A stretch of 63,911 nucleotides of DNA, filler included, from Lenisia limosa (lineage: Eukaryota > Protista > Breviatea): assembly GCA_001655205.1 (NCBI GenBank). It is 15 parts of 15 records of this genome, joined end to end, with 100 filler letters (N's around TTAATTAATTAA, not from the genome) between each part and the next. Parts side by side here need not be neighbours in the genome. Positions count along the whole stretch, not along the records: positions 22,283 to 24,422 come from LPNZ01009865.1; 14 more parts are not named here. One strand, written 5' to 3'. Positions 84 through 24,422 of the stretch are shown in pieces. How positions within the stretch are numbered: position 1 is the stretch's first letter; each line of letters starts with the position of its first letter. The notes under the pieces are model-generated. The model had not been told where the DNA came from. It saw nothing but the letters and a program-made list of their open reading frames with translations, and made no database searches. A program made the translations under genes and the position numbers.

Positions 84-2100
84 TGTTTTGGAACTCATCA
101 ACAAGGTCCGAAAAAACTCAACCCTGCAAGTGATGAAGGAACGCACTATTATGGCTAAAGCAACTGCTGATTTCGTTGTGAAACTGTACTACGCTTTTCA
201 GACCAAGGTACAGCTGGTGCAAGTGCAGTTATTGTTTTGCTGTAGAAGATGCCTCTTGTCTATTTGGTAGTTGTCTTTATTGAAATTACCATGTGACGTT
301 TGGTTTGAGGGTTTTCAACCATCATCAAACCCTCCCCCATTATCTTTCTATTATTTTCAAACGCTCGTGTGTTGTCTTAGGCCCAGGATTTTCTTTTCCT
401 TGTTAGTGATGAGATGCAGTGGCGACTGGCCTTGACTTTTTTTGTTATCAACGCTCGTGTGTTGTCAGTCCGCAGAGTTGATTTGGGATTTTTTGTTTCA
501 TAAATTTTCCAAATTTACCCCCCCCCCCCCNNNNNNNNNNNNNNNNNNNNNNNNNNNNNNNNNNNNNNNNNNNNNNNNNNNNNNNNNNNNNNNNNNNNNN
601 NNNNNNNNNNNNNNNNNNNNNNNNNNNNNNNNNNNNNNNNNNNNNNNNNNNNNNNNNNNNNNNNNNNNNNNNNNNNNNNNNNNNNNNNNNNNNNNNNNNN
701 NNNNNNNNNNNNNNNNNNNNNNNNNNNNNNNNNNNNNNNNNNNNNNNNNNNNNNNNNNNNNNNNNNNNNNNNNNNNCACCGAGACCTCAAAGTGGGGGAT
801 TGATGAGTACCTTCACGCACTTATTCTTAAACGATTCTTTGCCTCTCTCTTATGGTCGTAACTGTTCAGACATTGTGTGTTCCCACATCTAAAACAGTAT
901 TTTACCCTCTCCAGCCTGACAACTTGCTTTTGGACGCCAAAGGGCATGTCAAACTCACAGACTTCGGGCTCTCCTCGTAAGTTCTTTTCTTTTCCAATAA
1001 CGGACCTGATAACGGATATATACTATACTGTATATCATAGTACATTTGATATAAAATAGTATATGATATAGTACGTTTTTTTTTGAAAACCCCAATTTTC
1101 AATAAGTTTCAATTCACAAACAAAGTGCTAAATTAAAAAAAGCCTCAAGTCAGTTTGGCTAACTTCGAGAACCACTTTATCCATAGTCACATTACTCCAA
1201 TTTCTCCAATGGAAATCCCAATTCTTCTGAAGAGGATGTGGCGTATATATGTATATACTATATGTATAGTCAAAGCTCCGGACATCATTCAAAATTCCCG
1301 GACACATCAAAANNNNNNNNNNGGGTCAAAACCAAATTAAGTCCCTAAGCTCTCTATTTACGGTCCAAAAACGGTCAAAAACAAGTAAAAACCGTTAAAA
1401 GGCCATTCAAGGAATAAATGGCAACTATCCGGGAAAGTTTACCCTTGTAGACAGTGCTATTTTTAGCATTTTTTCCTCAAAATTCACCATTACATAGCCA
1501 AAGCAAATGGGAACCCGGAACCAATTACTCCGAGGGGTACAAATTTTTGTTTCTTAACACTAAAAGAGGGTAAGATTCAGAAAAAATCCTGTGAAAAGGC
1601 AAAAGGGGGACCCCCGGGAGACCAAATTCACGGATTTTTGACACTTGCTCAAAATTGAAAAACAAAGTTAGGGAACATTAGGAGGTCCATTTCTCTGTAT
1701 CTGTCGAAGCATTTTTTCAAAAAACACTAGCATTGGCCAATACAAGGTGTCAACTTCAAGCTATCCGGGAGTTGTGATGTGTCCGGGAATTTTGAACGAT
1801 GTCCGGACTTTGAGGACCGACATATACATGTATATAGTTATATGATATATATATATCTAGATACATGTATATATATATACTATATATATATATCACGACC
1901 CCCAAAGACGTATCATCGGTTATATCATATTATATCATATACGATATAACTAGGGCTTCTCCAAGGTCCATAGGGAATTGACGATATAACATAATACCAG
2001 ATTATTTTTATGAATGTAACATGTAGTAATTTTTGTTTTACTTTTTGTTCACCCCCCAGAATTGGACTGATGGAAGGTCAACAAGCTTGGGAGGAGGAAG
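84..2100 (+). CDS. AGC-family Ser/Thr kinase, MAST/Greatwall/Rim15-like (partial, multi-exon)
   Basis: Exon 84-207 gives ...KERTIMAKATADFVVKLYYAFQTK; 777-791 gives HRDLK; 915-976 gives PDNLLLDAKGHVKLTDFGLS; exon from 2060 continues SIGLMEGQQAW. GT-AG junctions keep the frame. DFGLSxIGL is typical of MAST/Greatwall kinases. Middle exons fall in an N gap. Confidence 0.85.
405..530 (+). repeat. Family B repeat (~130 bp), sense within a kinase intron, ends in a C-run
   Basis: AGTGATGAGATGCAGTGGCGACTGGCC...CTCGTGTGTTGTCAG...AGAGTTGATTTGGG...TTTCATAAATTTTCCAAATTTACCCCCC matches copies at 4899, 23489, 27046, 28488 and 40567. Confidence 0.9.
1270..1813. mobile_element. Candidate non-autonomous DNA transposon with ~40-bp inverted ends, in a kinase intron
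   Basis: 1270-1309 TCAAAGCTCCGGACATCATTCAAAATTCCCGGACACATCA is the near-perfect reverse complement of 1775-1813; AT/TA-rich flanks; no internal ORF recognised. Confidence 0.6.
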
Positions 2101-2444
2101 TAGATGTTAGTGGTGGTGGTGAACATTATGTGAACATTATATTGAACAGTTTGCTGAACAGTTTTTTGAACATGGTGATAGTAACAATGCCTTTTTCGTC
2201 AATACACCCACACACTACAGCCACACCTTTATTAATATCAATGATATCTATCCCCATCCCTCTCACCCTAAAGTGATATTATGCCCCCTTTGGATAGTTA
2301 TGACAATGTTCCCCAAAACTCTTAAATTAGGATACTATTCTGTTCATAACACTTCTTGTTCATTATTATGTCACCATCAATTTGCTTTGACTGTACACAA
2401 ACTAAGAAAGGTGCTACTGAATAGCTGGACTCTGGTAAATACGA

Positions 2445-2829
2445 CGCCCCACGTTTAGGGTCTTGCTTGACAATGAAGCGGCCTCTGCGCGACTAACACC
2501 TGTGTGGGCGCCGTCGCTGTTGAACTGAAACGCGCCGCGGAGGAGGACTGCACGCAAGGCCTCGTCGAGCTGCTTACTGCGGCCGGTGGCGACGACCTCG
2601 GTTCAGGCGGTGTTGGCGGCCTGGTTGCGGTCCTGGAGGTCCTTAGAGCTTGGTAGTCCAGTTCGGCTGGGTTACGCCGGCAAGGTCGAAGACCTACATC
2701 TGGGGCATGTACTCGCGAATGAAGTCGGTGACACAGTCGCCGTAGGTGGCCGCCATGGCCTCGGCGACCACACTGGATATTCCAGGCGCCGGGGCACTTG
2801 CCGGAGATGGACGATCCGTTGCAGTCGGT
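2445..2829 (-). pseudogene. GC-rich disrupted coding-like segment
   Basis: Minus strand reads TDCNGSSISGKCPGAWNIQC, then after frameshifts AEAMAATYGDCVTDFIREYMPQM*VFDL... and KDLQDRNQAANTA*TEVV...; GC-ending codons, with in-frame TAG, TAA and TGA. Confidence 0.35.
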
Positions 2830-2929
2830 NNNNNNNNNNNNNNNNNNNNNNNNNNNNNNNNNNNNNNNNNNNNTTAATTAATTAANNNNNNNNNNNNNNN
2901 NNNNNNNNNNNNNNNNNNNNNNNNNNNNN
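2830..2929. other. Artificial scaffold-joining spacer (N44-TTAATTAATTAA-N44), first of 14
   Basis: Identical 12-mer at 2874, 14110, 18026, 22227, 24467, 28864, 46251, 49079, 51628, 52737, 54903, 58682, 60577 and 62561, each inside N padding; it carries stops in all six frames. Confidence 0.98.
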
Positions 2930-3452
2930 GGGGGGGGGGGGGGGTGAAACATGAAGGAATTGTTGATGAAGTGAAAAGAGAGTATGCCGGATTGACACGT
3001 GGAATAAAGGCTTGATAGGTGCTAAAGGCTTGAAGGCTTGATAGGATTGTGCGGAATCGCCAGTGGCCTTAACCCCCCCTCCCACAGCAGGTACAGAATG
3101 TGGCTGGCTTCTTACAGGTGCCCCATTTGCATGTGGGACAGGTGTCAATGTCAAGCCACTACAATGAGGTAATACAGATGTCAAAATGGCTCCACTATAA
3201 CGCGGATGATAAGGGTTTATCTAATCGTATCATGCCTATGCGTCACACTATGACATATCACGACAACTTTTTTCAACTACAACTTAAATCACTCTACACT
3301 GAATTGTGAAACTTTCTTTTTTTCAAAAAATGGCCTCACCTATTGAAAATGTCCAAAAGCTTCTAGAATGTTTGAAAAAAATGGCAATAGAATATCTTCC
3401 ATTTGAGGTAGCCATTATTAGTCTACTGTATCGATTTAGCAAGTAGAGTTAC

Positions 3453-6400
3453 ATTAAAAATCCGTTATTTGACTTATTCGAAGACTGGTTTCTCAAACCC
3501 CAGTGCAATACCTTCTGGACGGTTTCTTTAACGTAAAGCTCGAGGCTTTGCTGGGACGTAAGACAAGGCAACAATAGAAAATGAGGAAACAAGGATAATG
3601 GGACTCACTTCGAAGATAGATCTGATGGCTGCGTCTCCGACCAGGGCAGAAATATCGGCCAATGTGAAGGTGATGGCCACTGGGTTGTGCTGGATGCTCT
3701 CCTTCCACTTGGTCGTGTTCGTCTGGAGTGAGTCAGGAATTCTTCTTTTGAGAATGGAAAGGAATCCCTTCAATGGACTGGTTTGACGAGTGTTGCATAA
3801 TGTGGACAATAAGTTAAGGGTAGTTGAAATAAACATTGCATCCCTTCATTCTGCATTGGTCCCATTGATATTTCCTCGTTACCCCCCCCCCNNNNNNNNN
3901 NNNNNNNNNNNNNNNNNNNNNNNNNNNNNNNNNNNNNNNNNNNNNNNNNNNNNNNNNNNNNNNNNNNNNNNNNNNNNNNNNNNNNNNNNNNNNNNNNNNN
4001 NNNNNNNNNNNNNNNNNNNNNCTCCCCCACGAAGCAGTCAGGACCCGGCATGCCGCCGTCACAGGAGTTTCCGGCATTTTTTGCATGAGAAGTCCATGAT
4101 GCGGTGTGCGGCATTTTCTGGCCTGTCGTCACCTGGATGAAGTCGTTTTTCGCCTCGGTCTCAATTTGCTTGATCTACAGTTATGAAAAATGAGAACTTA
4201 TGAATGTATACTTGGGTTAGAAAACAAAGAGCGAACAGCGCGAAGGAAATTAAATAACCAAGAAGTTAAATCGTTATTAGTCCTTCCGACTACTCATGCT
4301 ATCTGAGTGAAACCTGGCAACATATAAGCACCCCCCAGTTTCACATATTCCACATGTATGTGAGCTTTACTGTAACACAAACCGCAATCCATTCCCCACG
4401 TTGAAAGGCTTAGAGCCAGGCCCAACGGGGCTGTGCATGATGTCGGTGTTGAACTTAGTCAGGTCCTCCATTACGCCGCCGTCCATCGTCGTGGCTGCGA
4501 AGGCCGTGCCCCAGTACTTGGGAGGTGAAGAGATTGTAATGTAATACTCATCAAGAATGTAAGTGTTCAATATATCATATCGATTATTTCTACATCCGAT
4601 TAAATGAGGACTGAAATTAGGATTCTTTTCACCCGAATGAGCATCAGTTTTTCGTTTTTTGGGAGTGTAGAGAGTCTGTGTATGAGCAAAGCGCAAAAAG
4701 AGAACATACATTACATATCATATCTATTATATCATATTTATGTATTCACACTTTCAATTTGGATCCCGATGCTTCAGCAGAGGTTTACCTTACCTTGATA
4801 AACCGCGCATAGATTATCTTGTTCTCATCGGAGTCGTAAGAGGGAGGAAGACTGAGAAGCGCCTGTTTACAGAATCGATCAAGCTTGAAGTTCCAATCCT
4901 GAGGGGGGGGGGTAAAATTGGAAAATTTATGAAACAAAAAAAACCCAAATCAACTCTGTTGGCTGACAACCCACAACGGTTGATAACACAGCCCAGGCCA
5001 GTCGCTTTTGTAGCACCGCATCCTACCGTCAAGATAATGACACATTGCTTTTTGAAGCCCCCAGAATCACAATTCACGTAACGAGAGTTTCAAAGAATTA
5101 AACTCATTTCTTCAAAATAACAAGGCACGCAGCATCGTTTGCCCTCTCAAACATCCAACATGGATTACCTTGGTGTCAGGGTCTCTTTGAAGTTCGAGTT
5201 GATAGAGTTTATGGTGGTTCTGAATGGATCAATGAAGGGTAAAAATAATAAAAACAAATATTCTACTCAGAAACTAGTTATTCAGAATTATGCAAAAAGA
5301 ATTGGTGTCATGACCCCAAAGGAAAGTACGACGTTATCATGCTGTATCAAGGCCTTAAGCAAGAAGGCCACCACTGACTCCGTAGGCTGTTTATATCATT
5401 GTTTTGTGTTCCATGTGGGCATCAAACACCCGCCACCTGTGCAACAGTCAGGCCATTTCCTCCATCAAAGAACTTGGTGCTGACTGCCTCGAACGAAGGC
5501 TGGTTCACAAACACACCTGCCATCCCTACAATCATGACTGATTATAGTGGCATTTTACCGTCAATAAATAGGATTACCAGTTCAATTCACTTCATATCAT
5601 TATACATAATCGGTCCTATATCATGTTGCTAATAAAAACATATTGCAACTAGCTGTTAATACCCAATGGGAATAAAAATGACCATCCAATTAGTTGACTT
5701 ACAACTCCGTGCGCACAACACCCCCCTATACCTATACCGTATGCTGGGGAGGCAGCAGAAGCTGTGTGCACAGAGTTGTAAGGCAAATGATTGGGTGAAT
5801 TAATATTATTCTACAATCCAGTACCTCTTATAAGCGTGATGGTGTGGATGGCTTCGGCCAGATACATCCTTATTTATTATTTCTCATTGCTATATGATAT
5901 ATACCGCAAACCAAGGCCGTTCTGTCCCCAAGTCAGGACCTCCTTGACGTAGTGGCTGATGCTCTCGAAGCCCAAAACCGCCATTTCAGGCATGTCAATT
6001 CCGGTTGAGGAGGGTTCGAAGGTAGCCTGAGGAATAAGAACTTCCCGTTTGCAGCATTAGTCTCGTTTGAAAATAGGATCAAAAACGACAAGAATGGCCC
6101 CAAATAATCCCTAGCAGCGACTTCGCTGAGAACAAACAACGTCTTGCACGGCATACCTGGTCCGGCAGCCTAAACACCTCTCCCTTGATGTTGGTCCAAG
6201 TGCGGTTGTTTTCGAAGGTCAACTCAACAACTGAAGGGTTAAATGAGTTCAGTAGAGGGAATAAAAACATATAAAGCTGTAATCAATACTGCTATTTCTT
6301 ATATGATATATTATACATAATTATATTAATACATTCAGGTTTTATAAAAAAAGGCGATACCACCTAGCCAAAGCCGTACACCATCTAGATATTAATTCAC

Positions 6401-10811: not shown

Positions 10812-13800
10812 ATGGGGAAAGAGGTGAAACGTCAAACTAAGCATATTCCTGAGGATAATGAGATCTCAGAAACCCCCTCCCATAAGCTGGACGGTTCTGA
10901 TTTGAGTAAGTGGGGCGTTGAAGGCTTTGCTGATCTAGACCCCCTTATATCTTCTTAATGGATATAATTGTTCTCATTGTAGAGAACGGATAGTTTTTTG
11001 GCAATTCAATTTTTTGCTTTTGTCACAGAGGTCTTATTCTGCCCAGCTTACTGCAAGGACCTTGCTGAAAAGCATGGAGGACATCTTCTCTTTGCTGCAG
11101 ACGTTGAAAAGGTCAAACATGACAAGACAGAAACTAGGTAAGCCTCTTTCTGAATTGATCCCCATGCCAAAACTGTTTAATTTCGCTAATAATCAAGATT
11201 AATCGTGGTTTCGCACTATCGGCTCTTAACCCTGAAAAGGGGAGTCATGAACCGCCTCTCTGTAAGCCGTCTCGTCTCTTCTGGGATTTTTTTTTATCAC
11301 ATTTCGACTCACCTAAGTAGATTCGGAGAGATTTCCATATTCTTGACCTTGTTGAGATCACTTCCAACGCTCCCAATCAGGTTAGAGCCCTTCTTTTCTA
11401 CCGCATTTTTCGGGCGTGGCAACTTCTTTTTTTTTCAATACACTGAGTTTTAATCACGTTTTAGCACTTGTGCACTTTTATTCTTTCAAAGCGGCCTTCC
11501 CTTTTGCAATATCTTCTATGATTGCTTTTTTTATGCCATTTGCTAAAGTTGTGATTTTCTCTGGTTGTGTCTGGCTTTTCTCAAATAGGAATGGAATTCG
11601 TGATTTCTTGACACTGACACAGGCTTCTCACCCAATGTCATTATTAAGTCAATTCTGTCATCTTTTTTTATTCCAGTTGAATTTTGTTCTGGCAACACAT
11701 GTCCCTGATTGTGCACCCCAAAATTTTTGAACATACTTTTTCTTGTACTCGACAGGCAAGTTGAGATACTGTTTTCTATTAGTTTTACTGTGGTAAACAA
11801 CATTCCCGCAAATGTTCCTCAAATGACTAATTGGAGGATTCCTTGATTTCCGTTTTTCTTACGCTTACGTTCAAGTGTCGAATTGAGTTCCAGCCCCGCG
11901 ACGGAGAAAAAGATGCTATGATTGATATCCGCTCTCCTTATGGTTTGCGGGGGGGGGGTAAAAGAATGATGATGTGGAGCGTTATTTGCCAAACAAAGCC
12001 TTCAAATCCCCTTTAACTTCCCTTCCATCTGTGTCCTGAATTCATGCTGCAATTGATCAACTTGTTTTATTTTGTTTTCACGAATAAACAGTGTTGCTTG
12101 TCAACGTTCATATATTTTCCAATTTACCCCCCTCCAGCTGACGAGATTGTTCTCTGTCTCCGCCGTTCATTTGCCCGTCTCTCCTATGGCTTCCCCATTA
12201 CCGCAAAGTACCGCTTCGACTATCCCGAGGAGAGACAGCTCCCCTTCAAGCTCCCAAGTTTGCTGGCCTACCGCTTTCGAGAAAAAGAATGATCTTGGAA
12301 TACTAAAGTCAGACTCGAGATTTCCGTTTGAGCGTTATACTTAGAAATACCCTCTTTCATTGTACGCTTTTTCGATAGTCTATCACAGTATGGTGAAAGG
12401 ATTCCCCTGCGTTCTTCACAGTATTTGTCTCAGTAGCTGGATAGCCCTTTGTTCAACACAGTATTTGTCTCAATAGCTGGATTCCCTTGCGTCACCTTTT
12501 AAATTTATGTGTGTCAGAGCTACATTTCTTGTTTTTTTTTAAAAAAGGAATTCAGAAACTCCAGTTTCTTCACCCCCTCAGAGGTAGCCAACTACAGTAA
12601 CTTCCTTCATATGTGTGACGCCGCGTGTGACAAGTTCCAAGAGCAGTGGGGGGGGGGGGGNNNNNNNNNNNNNNNNNNNNNNNNNNNNNNNNNNNNNNNN
12701 NNNNNNNNNNNNNNNNNNNNNNNNNNNNNNNNNNNNNNNNNNNNNNNNNNNNNNNNNNNNNNNNNNNNNNNNNNNNNNNNNNNNNNNNNNNNNNNNNNNN
12801 NNNNNNNNNNNNNNNNNNNNNNNNNNNNNNNNNNNNNNNNNNNNNNNNNNNNNNNNNNNNNNNNNNNNNNNNNNNNNNNNNNNNNNNNNNNNNNNNNNNN
12901 NNNNNNNNGGCACGGTTCTCGACCTCACGCTACTGCATAAGAAACTCGTGGGAGTGTACCTTCTCATGAAGTGGTTTATGAAATGTAATTAGTTTTTATA
13001 TTATTGAAATCCACTCCTTGCTTTGAAATAATCAAGATCCTCTTGTGTTCTTTTTCAGATGTTCGCTGAGGTGTTCTATTTCTCAATACTTACCAAACAG
13101 GGTGACGACCTTCCCGTTAAGGCAATTGGCATGGCCCTCAGACACAACAACTACTGGACTGAAGTGGGCTTCTTTCTATTGCTTTGTTTGGCGTTTTAGA
13201 ATTTTGTTTCGTGATTAGTACCTTGACACTGATGCTCTTCATCGAAATGACCTGAAAGGTACTCCTGCGGGAAGTATCAATTCCTTCAGCCGCCTCCGCC
13301 ATCCTTACCGGCCTTCTGCAGTACAACGTCACCGTCACCAAGGTACCAGGGCCTACGCTGTGTTAAAATGCCTTCGTAGAGTGGTTGCTTGTTTTGTTAT
13401 TTTTTCATCAGCATGCCTCACGTTCAAGGCTTACAAGCGGTCCATTTTTGTCACTCTACCTACTCATACTATCTTCATCTCTCACACATTCACTCCTGTT
13501 GATTTTTGTTTTTTGCTTCATAAATATGCCACTTTACCCCACCCCCTCACCCCAGATTGACTTCGAGCGCATTGACGCGGTGGAGGGTTGGCAGCAGGCC
13601 ATGGACGGCTTCAAAATGAACACCAAATCCGCCCTGAAGTACCTCAATGTCTCCAACAACAAGATCAAGGACAAGCCGATCACTACCCTTGCCCAAGGTC
13701 TGTTGAGAGCAAGACATTATACCATAAACTAGACTACATGGGTTTATGCGGCTGTTTTCAGTGTTCCTTTTAAACTTCTGCCGTATGTTGGGCGATGATG

Positions 13801-22182: not shown

Positions 22183-22482
22183 NNNNNNNNNNNNNNNNNN
22201 NNNNNNNNNNNNNNNNNNNNNNNNNNTTAATTAATTAANNNNNNNNNNNNNNNNNNNNNNNNNNNNNNNNNNNNNNNNNNNNTTTTTTTTTTTTTACTTT
22301 GGACGGAGAAAGTGATACACCTCAAATCGACTTTGTTTAGCACATTTAATGTCATTTTTTCTTCATTTTACTATTTCATTTCCAAAGCTCTATCTTTAGG
22401 CGAGTCATAGCTGGACTCTACAACCATTTCATCTCTTTTATGACACAAATACTCTAAATAACGAAGAGCTCTCTCTTGTTAG

Positions 22483-24422
22483 TACACTATGAAATACAGT
22501 GATCTCAAAAACACCGTCAGTTATGTTGAGNNNNNNNNNNNNNNNNNNNNNNNNNNNNNNNNNNNNNNNNNNNNNNNNNNNNNNNNNNNNNNNNNNNNNN
22601 NNNNNNNNNNNNNNNNNNNNNNNNNNNNNNNNNNNNNNNNNNNNNNNNNNNNNNNNNNNNNNNNNNNNNNNNNNNNNNNNNNNNNNNNNNNNNNNNNNNN
22701 NNNNNNNNNNNNNNNNNNNNNNNNNNNNNNNNNNNNNNNNNNNNNNNNNNNNNNNNNNNNNNNNNNNNNNNNNNCCGTCTGTTTGCTCGGCGAGCGATTT
22801 TCAGAAACGTTTCTCACCTGTCCCTTGACCGTCACGTCGTTCGACTCTCTTCAGGCTGTTCTCAAGTTCAATTTCACCGTGAGAGCGATAGGCATTTTTC
22901 AATACCCCTGAAAATAACTTGTGTGGACGGCTTTGGCCTGATACTATCTTGACACACTACATTCATATAATATCAAAAAACAACAATTGAGATGAATAAT
23001 ATGGTAATAGAAGATGNNNNNNNNNNNNNNNNNNNNNNNNNNNNNNNNNNNNNNNNNNNNNNNNNNNNNNNNNNNNNNNNNNNNNNNNNNNNNNNNNNNN
23101 NNNNNNNNNNNNNNNNNNNNNNNNNNNNNNNNNNNNNNNNNNNNNNNNNNNNNNNNNNNNNNNNNNNNNNNNNNNNNNNNNNNNNNNNNNTATGCTTGGA
23201 GTGTCAGATTATTCGGTTCGTGAGTAGTGTCGATATTGTACCGGTCTTTTTCGGACCGTAGGGAAGCCCTAATGATATCCAGTCTGTTGCAGTACAATAT
23301 TCTTCATAGAAATATCCTTCGTTTTACCCCTCCCCCCAGGTTGTCGCATCAAAACAGAACACGGCACACCTGGTCACAGGGGAGGTTGAAATGCGGTCCG
23401 CAGTCAAGCTTGAGCTGGTCAGTGTACTCCCCACGTCTTTTATCTACGACCGTGCTATTACTCCGGCACTGGAAATCAAGGTATGTATGAAGCGACTGGC
23501 TTGGGTTTTTGTTTGTTTGTTGTTTTCAACCCTCGTGTGTTGTCAGCCAACAGATTTTGTCCTTTTGTTTTTGTATAAATTTTCCCATTTTACCCCCCCT
23601 CCTCAGGTATTCCAGGACTCGCCCTCAGGGTCGGTAGTGACCGCAAATGCCAAAGTTGTCGCATCTGTGCCGGGCATAGGTGGGGTGATAGGGTATAGAT
23701 TATAATTACTAATCCCTAAAGTCCCCAAAAATGACTGAATTTCTCAATAAATCCTCTTTTTATCGATATTTTCGGGGGCAAAGTGGTTGATGTAATATGA
23801 TATGTTATTAGGACTTCCCTACAATCCCAAAAAAGACTAAATTCTAAATCCTTGATAAATATCGATATTTTCCAGTCTTTTTCGGACGAGGGAAGTCCGA
23901 CATATTTTGCTTGTGGCAGTCCTTTCGCATGTGGGCAGTCCCACTTCTTTTGAGTTTCTGTTTTTCATCCCTTCCTGCAATATCTCATAGTTATCCTTCA
24001 TTACCCCCCCCCCCCNNNNNNNNNNNNNNNNNNNNNNNNNNNNNNNNNNNNNNNNNNNNNNNNNNNNNNNNNNNNNNNNNNNNNNNNNNNNNNNNNNNNN
24101 NNNNNNNNNNNNNNNNNNNNNNNNNNNNNNNATGTTTAGTGACCTGCGACTGAAGGCGCTGGCTGAATCCGTGTACCAGGTTTGATGGGTGGTTGGGGGG
24201 AGTACTCAGCATTGAATTATAGTTGACATCAACAGCCAGATCATATACAGTGTCTTGACCGATTTTCCTTCGGAAATCATCAGCAAATCGGTCAAGACTT
24301 ATCCAGGTCAATGCTCCTGTACACGGACCACTTTTACCCTTCCCCCATCCAGATTCGAGTGACGAGCGGTGAAGCGGTTCTAGATTTAGCTGGCATCCAT
24401 ACTGCTAACTGCAGCCAGCAAA
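22483..24422 (+). CDS. Hypothetical beta-strand-rich protein (internal exons)
   Basis: Exon 23340-23480 is exactly 47 codons (VVASKQ...TPALEIK) and splices in frame to VFQDSPSGSVVTANAKVVASVPG; other exons give VCLLGERFSETFLTCPLTV, MFSDLRLKALAESVYQ and IRVTSGEAVLDLAG. Confidence 0.55.
23195..23339 (+). repeat. Family D repeat interrupted by an A2 MITE half, ending at a 3' splice site
   Basis: TTGGAGTGTCAGATTATTCGGTTCGTG, then an A2 right half (to ~23271), then AATATTCTTCATAGAAATATCCTTCGTTTTACCCCTCCCCCCAG|. Confidence 0.8.
23489..23606 (+). repeat. Family B repeat occupying almost the whole intron 23481-23606
   Basis: GTATGTATG, then AAGCGACTGGC...CCCATTTTACCCCCCCTCCTCAG|. Confidence 0.9.
23809..23901. 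mobile_element. Family A2 MITE
   Basis: TAGGACTTCCCTACAATCCC...TTTTTCGGACGAGGGAAGTCCGA. Confidence 0.75.
24248..24313. mobile_element. Family E Tc1/mariner-like MITE (degenerate)
   Basis: TA|CAGTGTCTTGACCGATTT...AAATCGGTCAAGACTTATCCAGGTCAATG matches 51323-51398. Confidence 0.75.

Follow-up and report, generated by a model that had tools for sequence, protein, structure and literature searches.

The subject of this report is a dispersed repeat, termed family B, which forms the body of an intron in DNA from the breviate Lenisia limosa (NCBI GenBank assembly GCA_001655205.1). The window, i.e. the whole stretch of DNA that was analysed, is 63,911 nucleotides (nt) long, filler included; the piece of it that was examined, positions 22283 to 24422 (LPNZ01009865.1), is part of a multi-exon eukaryotic gene on the + strand. 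Taken as a whole, the evidence makes it probable that the interval 23481-23606 is a spliceosomal intron with a 5'-truncated family B copy as its body, and that family B is an introner-like cassette of the 3' splice region, added by 3'-anchored copy-in. Family B is a non-autonomous interspersed repeat of ~140 nt with roughly 10^4 copies. Its copies end at intron acceptors, lie in the sense orientation, are truncated to varying degrees at the 5' end, stack head to tail and have neither inverted repeats nor family-wide duplications. The original prediction had held that this repeat supplies the 3' end of introns, and at 23481-23606 this is largely supported: the family similarity ends at the AG of a 126-nt intron.

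The intron on the + strand is complete, with GT..AG borders and in phase 0. Its donor is GTATGT (first G at 23481) and its acceptor CAG (G at 23606). No stop interrupts the two flanking exons (23340-23480 and 23607-23679), whose frames match across the intron, and the reading frame extends through two further exons on the contig L002 only with the GT..AG borders listed in Table 1. Since the flanking and the later exons keep one frame, the interval is exactly one phase-0 intron. L002 (ENA metagenome-assembly contig ERZ3820729 NODE_5834, 2,400 nt) carries the same sequence as the piece. The N-runs of the window at 22531-22774, 23017-23190 and 24016-24131 are scaffold gaps, which L002 fills with real, shorter sequence (121, 95 and 46 nt); because of these differing lengths, the offset between window and L002 varies by segment. 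The intron length is a multiple of three and there is no stop in the exon frame, so that the gene caller reads through it (open reading frame (ORF) P0001).

The extent of the repeat within the intron was determined from contigs of X1, the run containing the stretch (no library type is recorded for it, and it was treated as DNA), which were aligned to the piece once at 90% likeness and once at 80% likeness with 7-nt bins. At 90%, the four introns of the piece each hold a different high-copy segment and the exons lie at a single-copy depth of ~15-30. At 80%, 1,553 X1 contigs match the intron. The summed depth is 0-30 in the exons, 1,600-3,900 at 23490-23510, 160,000-307,000 in the core (23518-23552) and 1,200-2,400 at 23560-23601, and it is back to 30 from 23609. 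The drop to single copy falls within 23602-23615, i.e. at the acceptor AG. Expressed as summed contig depth, the core has ~10^4 copy-equivalents, roughly 10^4 times single copy. An intron-less joint of the two exons was not seen in the X1 contigs.

The similarity to family B at 80% likeness spans 23489 to ~23604. At the other end of the intron, 31 contigs extend 5' of 23489 with a conserved family arm (..ATGGGATGCGGTGCTGCA) that is missing in the window copy, which is therefore 5'-truncated. It lacks 31 nt of this arm as well as GTTGA after 23554, and it is 89% identical to the family consensus (84% counting gaps). Loose contig ends were found at 23516 and 23554 in 156-172 contigs. The first 8 nt of the intron (GTATGTAT) are not family B sequence, in line with the predicted use of a host donor, and, this canonical donor aside, nothing of an older intron is left. 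Family B is thus effectively the whole intron at this locus, and the contrast that had been drawn with whole-intron introners fails here.

Further copies were reached by an exhaustive HMMER protein search with exon, intron and exon (23340-23702) as the query. In this search 33 ORFs elsewhere matched the intron translation only, and no homologue of the host exons was found. Seven of the ORFs were looked up, and each of them belongs to a contig of the same assembly (L003-L009); these contigs together with L002 form the 80.3-kb sample to which the counts below refer. Word-indexed protein searches with the translated repeat returned the window's own ORF alone, or nothing. A 22-mer of the core had no match in JGI metagenome contigs, and viral contigs, scanned with an 18-mer, yielded a single chance match, in a phage coding region. 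The long artificial ORFs through introns (P0002-P0034 on L003-L009) were produced by a metagenome gene caller reading TGA as Trp; this reading is an artefact of the caller and no evidence of a variant genetic code.

A hidden Markov model (HMM) profile of family B was built from nine near-full copies. It has 139 positions (full unit ~140 nt), begins with GTACGCTGGAGTGATGGGATGCGG.. and finishes with ..CATAAATTTTCCAATTTTAC, and its consensus, built independently from other contigs, agrees with the one drawn up earlier. In the sample, nhmmer found 29 matches, corresponding to about 27 copies or fragments with 84-99% identity to the consensus. They are located in introns of the window gene, a ULK-like kinase gene, an SNF2 helicase gene, a metallophosphoesterase gene and others, i.e. 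similar introns occur at non-homologous sites in unrelated genes, as is typical of introners. Twenty-two copies end at model positions 135-139 (TTTTAC), whereas the starts are scattered over positions 1, 3, 5, 8, 11, 13-15, 18, 22, 24, 26, 32 (the window copy), 36, 53, 55, 61, 74, 86 and 99. A constant 3' end combined with variable 5' truncation is the pattern of retroposons.

The TTTTAC is followed by a C-run of 4-18 nt, usually 7-14 and often preceded by T, and an AG is reached within 13-34 nt after the 3' end of the repeat, immediately before the exon. The 3' border of family B always fits the intron border, the similarity stopping at the AG. The 5' border varies; it is 8 nt short of the donor in the window copy and adjoins other units or unique sequence elsewhere. 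About 16 of the 22 intact 3' ends lead directly into C-run, AG and exon-like sequence, which agrees with the claim that the repeat carries a branch-like TTTAC and a C-tract. In 4-5 of the 22, the next element is a unit of a second family, termed A, which itself bears TTTTAC, C-run and AG.

Acceptor position and orientation were fixed independently by protein homology. Family B is sense in every copy for which the host strand is known in this way. The profile scan of the whole assembly that had been suggested was run on the 80.3 kb, and there the expected sense orientation holds for every gene fixed by homology. In the SNF2-type helicase gene on L006, a tiny old intron keeps its acceptor-like end (..CTTTAATCCATCGCAG), which is followed by two B units, C9 and ACAG; from its first residue on, the exon behind this AG aligns with Pfam Helicase_C positions 70-101 (E = 5e-7). 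Similarly, the exon after a B-derived AG on L005 matches Metallophos 167-190 (E = 0.0045), and kinase exons flank a stacked intron on L003. On L008, a B copy and the exon that follows it are both on the minus strand; the exon reads ..LIWLHGLGD.., which we take to resemble a thioesterase motif.

The kinase gene (L003 8739-10661) has ten introns and serves as an internal control. Nine of the ten consist of unique sequence, are 31-93 nt long and have no C-run; all nine show a branch-like TTTAC, CTTAC or CTAAC 8-11 nt before the AG. Two of them measure merely 31 and 37 nt. The remaining one, intron 9, is 433 nt long. It starts with 37 nt of unique sequence and continues with an old diverged B, an A, a 9-nt remnant of A and a B with 99% identity to the consensus, followed by C10, AG and the exon. 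In the SNF2 and kinase genes, family B has thus joined older introns rather than created them, and both the SNF2 acceptor lying upstream of the B units and the stack in kinase intron 9 fit the proposal of the original prediction that the repeat targets or replaces 3' splice regions.

Family B copies are arranged head to tail with each other and with family A, and ~17 of the 27 B 5' junctions directly follow a TTTTAC-like motif or the C-run of an upstream unit. The order at L003 ~11965-12185, for instance, is A, truncated B, truncated A, C12, TAG, exon. In all five stacks with two B units, the acceptor-side unit is closer to the consensus; the youngest unit of a stack adjoins the exon. Family A is present in about 16 copies and behaves at acceptors as B does. 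Its body is unlike that of B, and the last ~18 nt (AAATTTCC..TTTTAC) are alike. At 4-5 loci, a full-length unit directly follows a TTTTAC-like motif and starts with GTAC..; one junction reads TTTTTA|GTAC.

The 3' terminal signal itself was counted as TTAC plus pyrimidine run plus AG. On L002 the + strand has five of these motifs and the - strand none (shuffle mean 0.15; 2,000 shuffles), and all five occurrences precede an in-frame exon, whichever repeat the intron holds. The sample contains 45 such motifs, ~15 after B, ~8 after A and the rest after other sequence; TTTTAC, C-tract and AG are not specific to B and are shared with family A and several other intron ends. As nine of the ten kinase introns have no C-run, the C-tract is borne by the elements, and a role of the C-run as the general pyrimidine tract of the organism was rejected on the same grounds. 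The A at 23592 within TTTTAC is the presumed branch site, judged by its position 14 nt before the AG; this spacing compares with 8-11 nt in the ordinary introns, and family B would seem to mimic the short native distance. In vivo, TTTTAC and the AG would be used as branch site and acceptor, and the C-tract would act as the pyrimidine tract. In mammals, C-rich tracts are known to work via poly(C)-binding proteins (PMC4797308).

The native kinase introns have a G/T-rich sequence after the donor GT. Since this is also seen where no repeat is present, the idea that G-rich 5' ends and C-rich 3' ends form inverted repeats with each other was discarded. Separately, introns at L005 ~3270-3320 and L004 ~6325-6385 contain G-runs of 12-13 nt followed 10-30 nt further on by C-runs of 13-14 nt; these pairs could form hairpins. 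Some G-runs resemble expansions of a GGG inside family B.

Hallmarks of DNA transposons were looked for in the window copy and across the family. There are no terminal inverted repeats within the window copy and the ends of the B consensus are not complementary, as had been stated for long terminal inverted repeats. The predicted fold of the window copy is no better than that of shuffled sequence (z = -0.15 as RNA, +0.55 as DNA). No family-wide target-site duplication was detected, the longest common substring averaging 3.19 in real and 3.46 in mismatched upstream/downstream pairs (n = 16). The window copy is the only one among these 16 to reach a direct repeat of 6 nt: GTAT begins both the intron and the downstream exon, and AGGTAT straddles both borders. 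A border repeat of this length is reached by 3.3% of the mismatched control pairs, and no match of intron +1..+4 to exon +1..+4 exists in the other four L002 introns. An E-value scan of 23191-24015 against Rfam gave no credible family and one chance microRNA match, with no RNA polymerase III (Pol III)-type head (tRNA, 7SL, 5S); a partner long interspersed nuclear element (LINE) sharing the 3' end was not found either.

Table 1 Features of the family B locus and its surroundings, in window coordinates
Feature	Position	Strand	Basis
Exon 5' of the intron, 47 codons, starts and ends in phase 0	23340..23480	+	Open frame; in-frame join to 23607-23679 and L002 exons
Whole intron, 126 nt, GT..AG	23481..23606	+	Borders; in-frame exons; read through as P0001
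Donor GTATGTAT, outside family B	23481..23488	+	Other copies carry a different 5' arm before 23489
Family B copy, 5'-truncated, HMM positions 32-139	23489..23593	+	nhmmer E = 1e-18
Family B core, most conserved, highest copy	23516..23554	+	Summed depth 160,000-307,000 vs ~30 in single-copy flank
TTTTAC, invariant 3' terminus of A and B, presumed branch site (A at 23592)	23588..23593	+	Position
C-tract CCCCCCTCCTC plus acceptor AG	23594..23606	+	Family similarity stops here
Downstream exon, 24 codons + 1 nt	23607..23679	+	Frame
Family A copy, ends in TTTTAC + C-tract + CAG, directly 5' of exon 23340	23198..23339	+	Summed depth 15,000-37,000; alignments
Next intron, 338 nt on L002, end within window N-gap	23680..24015	+	Family-A-related repeats
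Following intron, 173 nt, third high-copy repeat, ends in TTTTAC + C-rich + CAG	24180..24352	+	L002 frame; depth

In the favoured explanation, the invariant 3' end of family B (..AAATTTTCCAATTTTAC, a variable C-run and AG) would supply branch site, pyrimidine tract and acceptor to the next exon. Units would be added in the sense orientation only, with the 3' end as anchor and the 5' end cut back to varying extents, and would land at or just before an exon start, in most cases where an existing intron ends. Each addition would shift the older branch site and acceptor upstream and replace the working ones, so that stacks would build up head to tail. Family A, with another body and a similar 3' terminus, would act likewise. 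Copying from the 3' end might proceed by reverse transcription primed at the C-tail or by repair synthesis primed from C-runs; 3'-anchored copy-in rather than cut-and-paste is the route to which the constant 3' and variable 5' ends point. At the window locus, a new intron with a donor from the duplicated target may have arisen when the unit inserted at a proto-splice site (AAG|GTAT), or the unit may have replaced nearly all of a tiny older intron.

A more far-reaching form of this explanation is possible, if on balance doubtful: A and B may be self-propagating 3' splice-site cassettes that spread via sense-strand RNA aimed at acceptors. Excised intron RNA could be attached at or near 3' splice sites through reversal of the spliceosomal reactions, with incomplete reverse transcription to follow, or reverse transcription could be primed by the C-tail at the C-tracts of existing introns. 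Related to the first route is transposition by the spliceosome proper, in which excised B intron RNA is reverse-spliced or joined near acceptors, copied incompletely by reverse transcriptase and recombined into the genome, an idea considered by Ares et al. and in work on fungal introner-like elements. It would account for the sense-only copies, for a 3' boundary that is exactly the AG and for insertion points at 3' splice regions, and a junction such as TTTTTA|GTAC, with GTAC.. starting after the TTTTAC-like motif at 4-5 loci, looks like a join of branch site and 5' splice site. It is nonetheless unlikely, for full reverse splicing predicts complete GT..AG copies and not 5'-truncated ones, and the stacks mix the two families (A, then B, then A) and start at internal positions. 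True intron circles, moreover, keep tails of at least 14 nt and leave no branch+1 junction. An origin of the TTTTAC|GTAC junction from processed circular introns is unsupported for this reason, published circles having such tails and most junctions being heterologous.

A miniature inverted-repeat transposable element (MITE)-like DNA-transposon introner of the Symbiodinium/Polarella class 4-5 type would bring its own 3' splice site and obtain its donor from a 4-nt GHNN duplication. The GTAT and AGGTAT repeats at the window borders follow this published pattern, but a repeat as long arises in the controls, and the direct repeats of the 16 copies are on average no longer than those of mismatched pairs. 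With inverted repeats and self-complementarity lacking, and with 5' ends that vary widely and 31 nt of the 5' arm missing from the window copy, which is unexpected for cut-and-paste, only a slim chance is left for this explanation. The opposite view, that TTTTAC, C-tract and AG are an ordinary 3' splice signal and family B an ordinary intronic repeat, can draw on the motif at all five L002 intron 3' ends whatever repeat lies inside and on the ~20 of 45 motifs without A or B upstream. It is very hard to reconcile with C-runs being absent from nine kinase introns, with the fixed register of the B end to C-run and AG, with every copy pointing at an acceptor and with a repeat that fills the window intron to 8 nt from the donor and leaves no room for a prior intron; we regard it as highly improbable. 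Finally, collapsed repeats, chimeric contigs or poly-G/C read artefacts come to mind in a fragmented short-read assembly with N-gaps in the window and error-prone homopolymers. That the structure is an artefact is nearly inconceivable, as the window scaffold equals L002 at every base outside the gaps, X1 contigs cover 23528-23756 without a single difference and the motif keeps its register on many contigs in front of in-frame exons with homology support.

Several points weigh against 3'-anchored copy-in of a splice-region cassette. The spliced joint was not seen in the runs searched (X1 and one unrelated-looking RNA run of the same study), and no RNA run was found that contains the host gene or shows use of a B-adjacent AG; the intron, being a multiple of three and stop-free, may be retained. 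The copy number is a summed contig depth and not a true count. The additional loci were found through ORFs that read through sense, exon-adjacent B copies, so the nine index copies are biased to this arrangement and only ~18 copies are unbiased, and the gene strand is fixed by homology in 4-5 genes only. Target-primed reverse transcription would predict variable target-site duplications and none were found, although stacking weakens this test. Neither a partner element, a mobilising enzyme nor an empty site was found, and no reverse-transcriptase-like ORF was noticed in the 80 kb, whose ORFs were not scanned against Pfam. Homopolymer lengths are uncertain in short-read assemblies, and the C-run after TTTTAC, which is poly-C and not poly-A, could equally be target sequence or slippage.

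A few further observations concern the host gene and the sample. If retained, the intron 23481-23606 would add 42 residues, mostly hydrophobic, and the family B consensus is likewise open in that frame except for TGA codons in the 5' arm. The upstream exon has no Pfam match. The intron 23680..24015 ends with a degenerate CATTAC branch-like motif, C12 and AG. Within the intron 24180..24352, a perfect 14-nt inverted repeat at 24252-24298 (GTCTTGACCGATTT / AAATCGGTCAAGAC, 19-nt loop) belongs to the third high-copy repeat (summed depth ~10,000). Near window 22283-22295 (L002 240-275, a poly-T run of ~35 nt), ~750 nt of AT-rich, apparently non-coding sequence separate two in-frame exons of the same strand. 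L002 220-1117 may be a single 898-nt intron ending in the family A unit, in which case the apparent small exon at window 23191-23219 may belong to the repeat. The longest uninterrupted coding stretch in the 80 kb is a 529-residue stop-free ORF at L004 7049-8635, which encodes an Ala/Glu-rich, coiled-coil-like protein.

Introners that carry their own 3' splice site and take the donor from a target-site duplication or from the exon are known from Symbiodinium and Polarella (Roy et al., preprint 10.1101/2020.10.14.339549; Gozashti et al. 2022, PMC9860276). Classes 4/5 of Symbiodinium and Polarella glacialis are like family B in their high copy number (thousands of copies), single orientation and coincidence of element end and 3' splice site, and the window copy shows a GTAT/GTAT border repeat. 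Unlike these elements, which are essentially full length and carry terminal inverted repeats as well as a constant 4-nt duplication, family B lacks inverted repeats and shows no duplication across the family, is variably truncated at the 5' end, has a homopolymer C-tract and stacks on existing introns. The introners of Micromonas pusilla and Aureococcus are also short, non-autonomous whole-intron repeats in unrelated genes (PMC11282704), with one splice site given by the element and the other co-opted (Worden 2009; Huff et al. 2016; PMC11282704). The IE1 element of Micromonas brings the 5' GT/GC with it and acquires its AG through a 3-nt duplication (PMC11282704); family B is its mirror image, without the hallmarks of DNA transposons.

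About 5% of classified introner families are derived from non-long-terminal-repeat (non-LTR) retrotransposons (Gozashti et al. 2025, PMC12130899). Family B resembles these in its constant 3' end, 5' truncation and a 3' terminus shared by two families, and perhaps in the variable C-run as a homopolymer tail, and it differs in having a poly-C instead of a poly-A tail and in that no LINE, reverse transcriptase, duplication or Pol III head was found. The pipeline of that study demands similarity to both intron borders and would therefore filter out most B copies (PMC12130899). Fungal introner-like elements are sense-only, lack inverted repeats and duplications and have been proposed to spread via RNA (van der Burgt 2012; PMC3609843), all as in family B, but they are full-length introns with stable predicted folds, unlike the window copy with its z of -0.15. 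In [D1,2] stwintrons (PMC12403724), new introns likewise land inside a splice signal of an older intron; they nest in the donor, whereas B units are added on the acceptor side.

The principle of an element-borne 3' splice site is thus already published, as are non-LTR-derived introners, and to call the system undescribed, as the original prediction did, is too strong; what differs is the combination of features. No description was found in the literature of 3'-anchored truncation, a C-homopolymer, a 3' end shared by two families, acceptor-side stacking and the lack of inverted repeats and duplications combined. In primates, antisense Alu elements supply a pyrimidine tract and a 3' splice site. 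Family B is like them in that a transposable element provides the pyrimidine tract and the AG, but the contribution of Alu is accidental and creates exons, whereas that of B is systematic and defines intron ends.

The origin of new spliceosomal introns is a long-standing question, for which introners are the best-supported source. To our knowledge, nearly all well-characterised introner families resemble cut-and-paste DNA transposons that are copied whole. Family B, with ~10^4 occurrences in a small genome with tiny native introns (31-93 nt), departs from this in its acceptor anchoring, 5' truncation, C-tract and pile-up at 3' splice sites, which point to copying without a transposase. Such elements can renew or replace the splice signals of existing introns besides creating introns, and detection pipelines that rely on both borders would largely miss families of this kind. 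The system would also lend itself well to testing C-rich pyrimidine tracts and short distances between branch site and AG. Should A and B turn out to be cassettes spread via RNA, their copies, ~10^4 in number, truncated, stacked and in sense orientation only, would constitute the first footprint that RNA-mediated transposition of spliceosomal introns is seen to leave in a genome on a large scale, and likewise a footprint of the continual renewal of acceptors.

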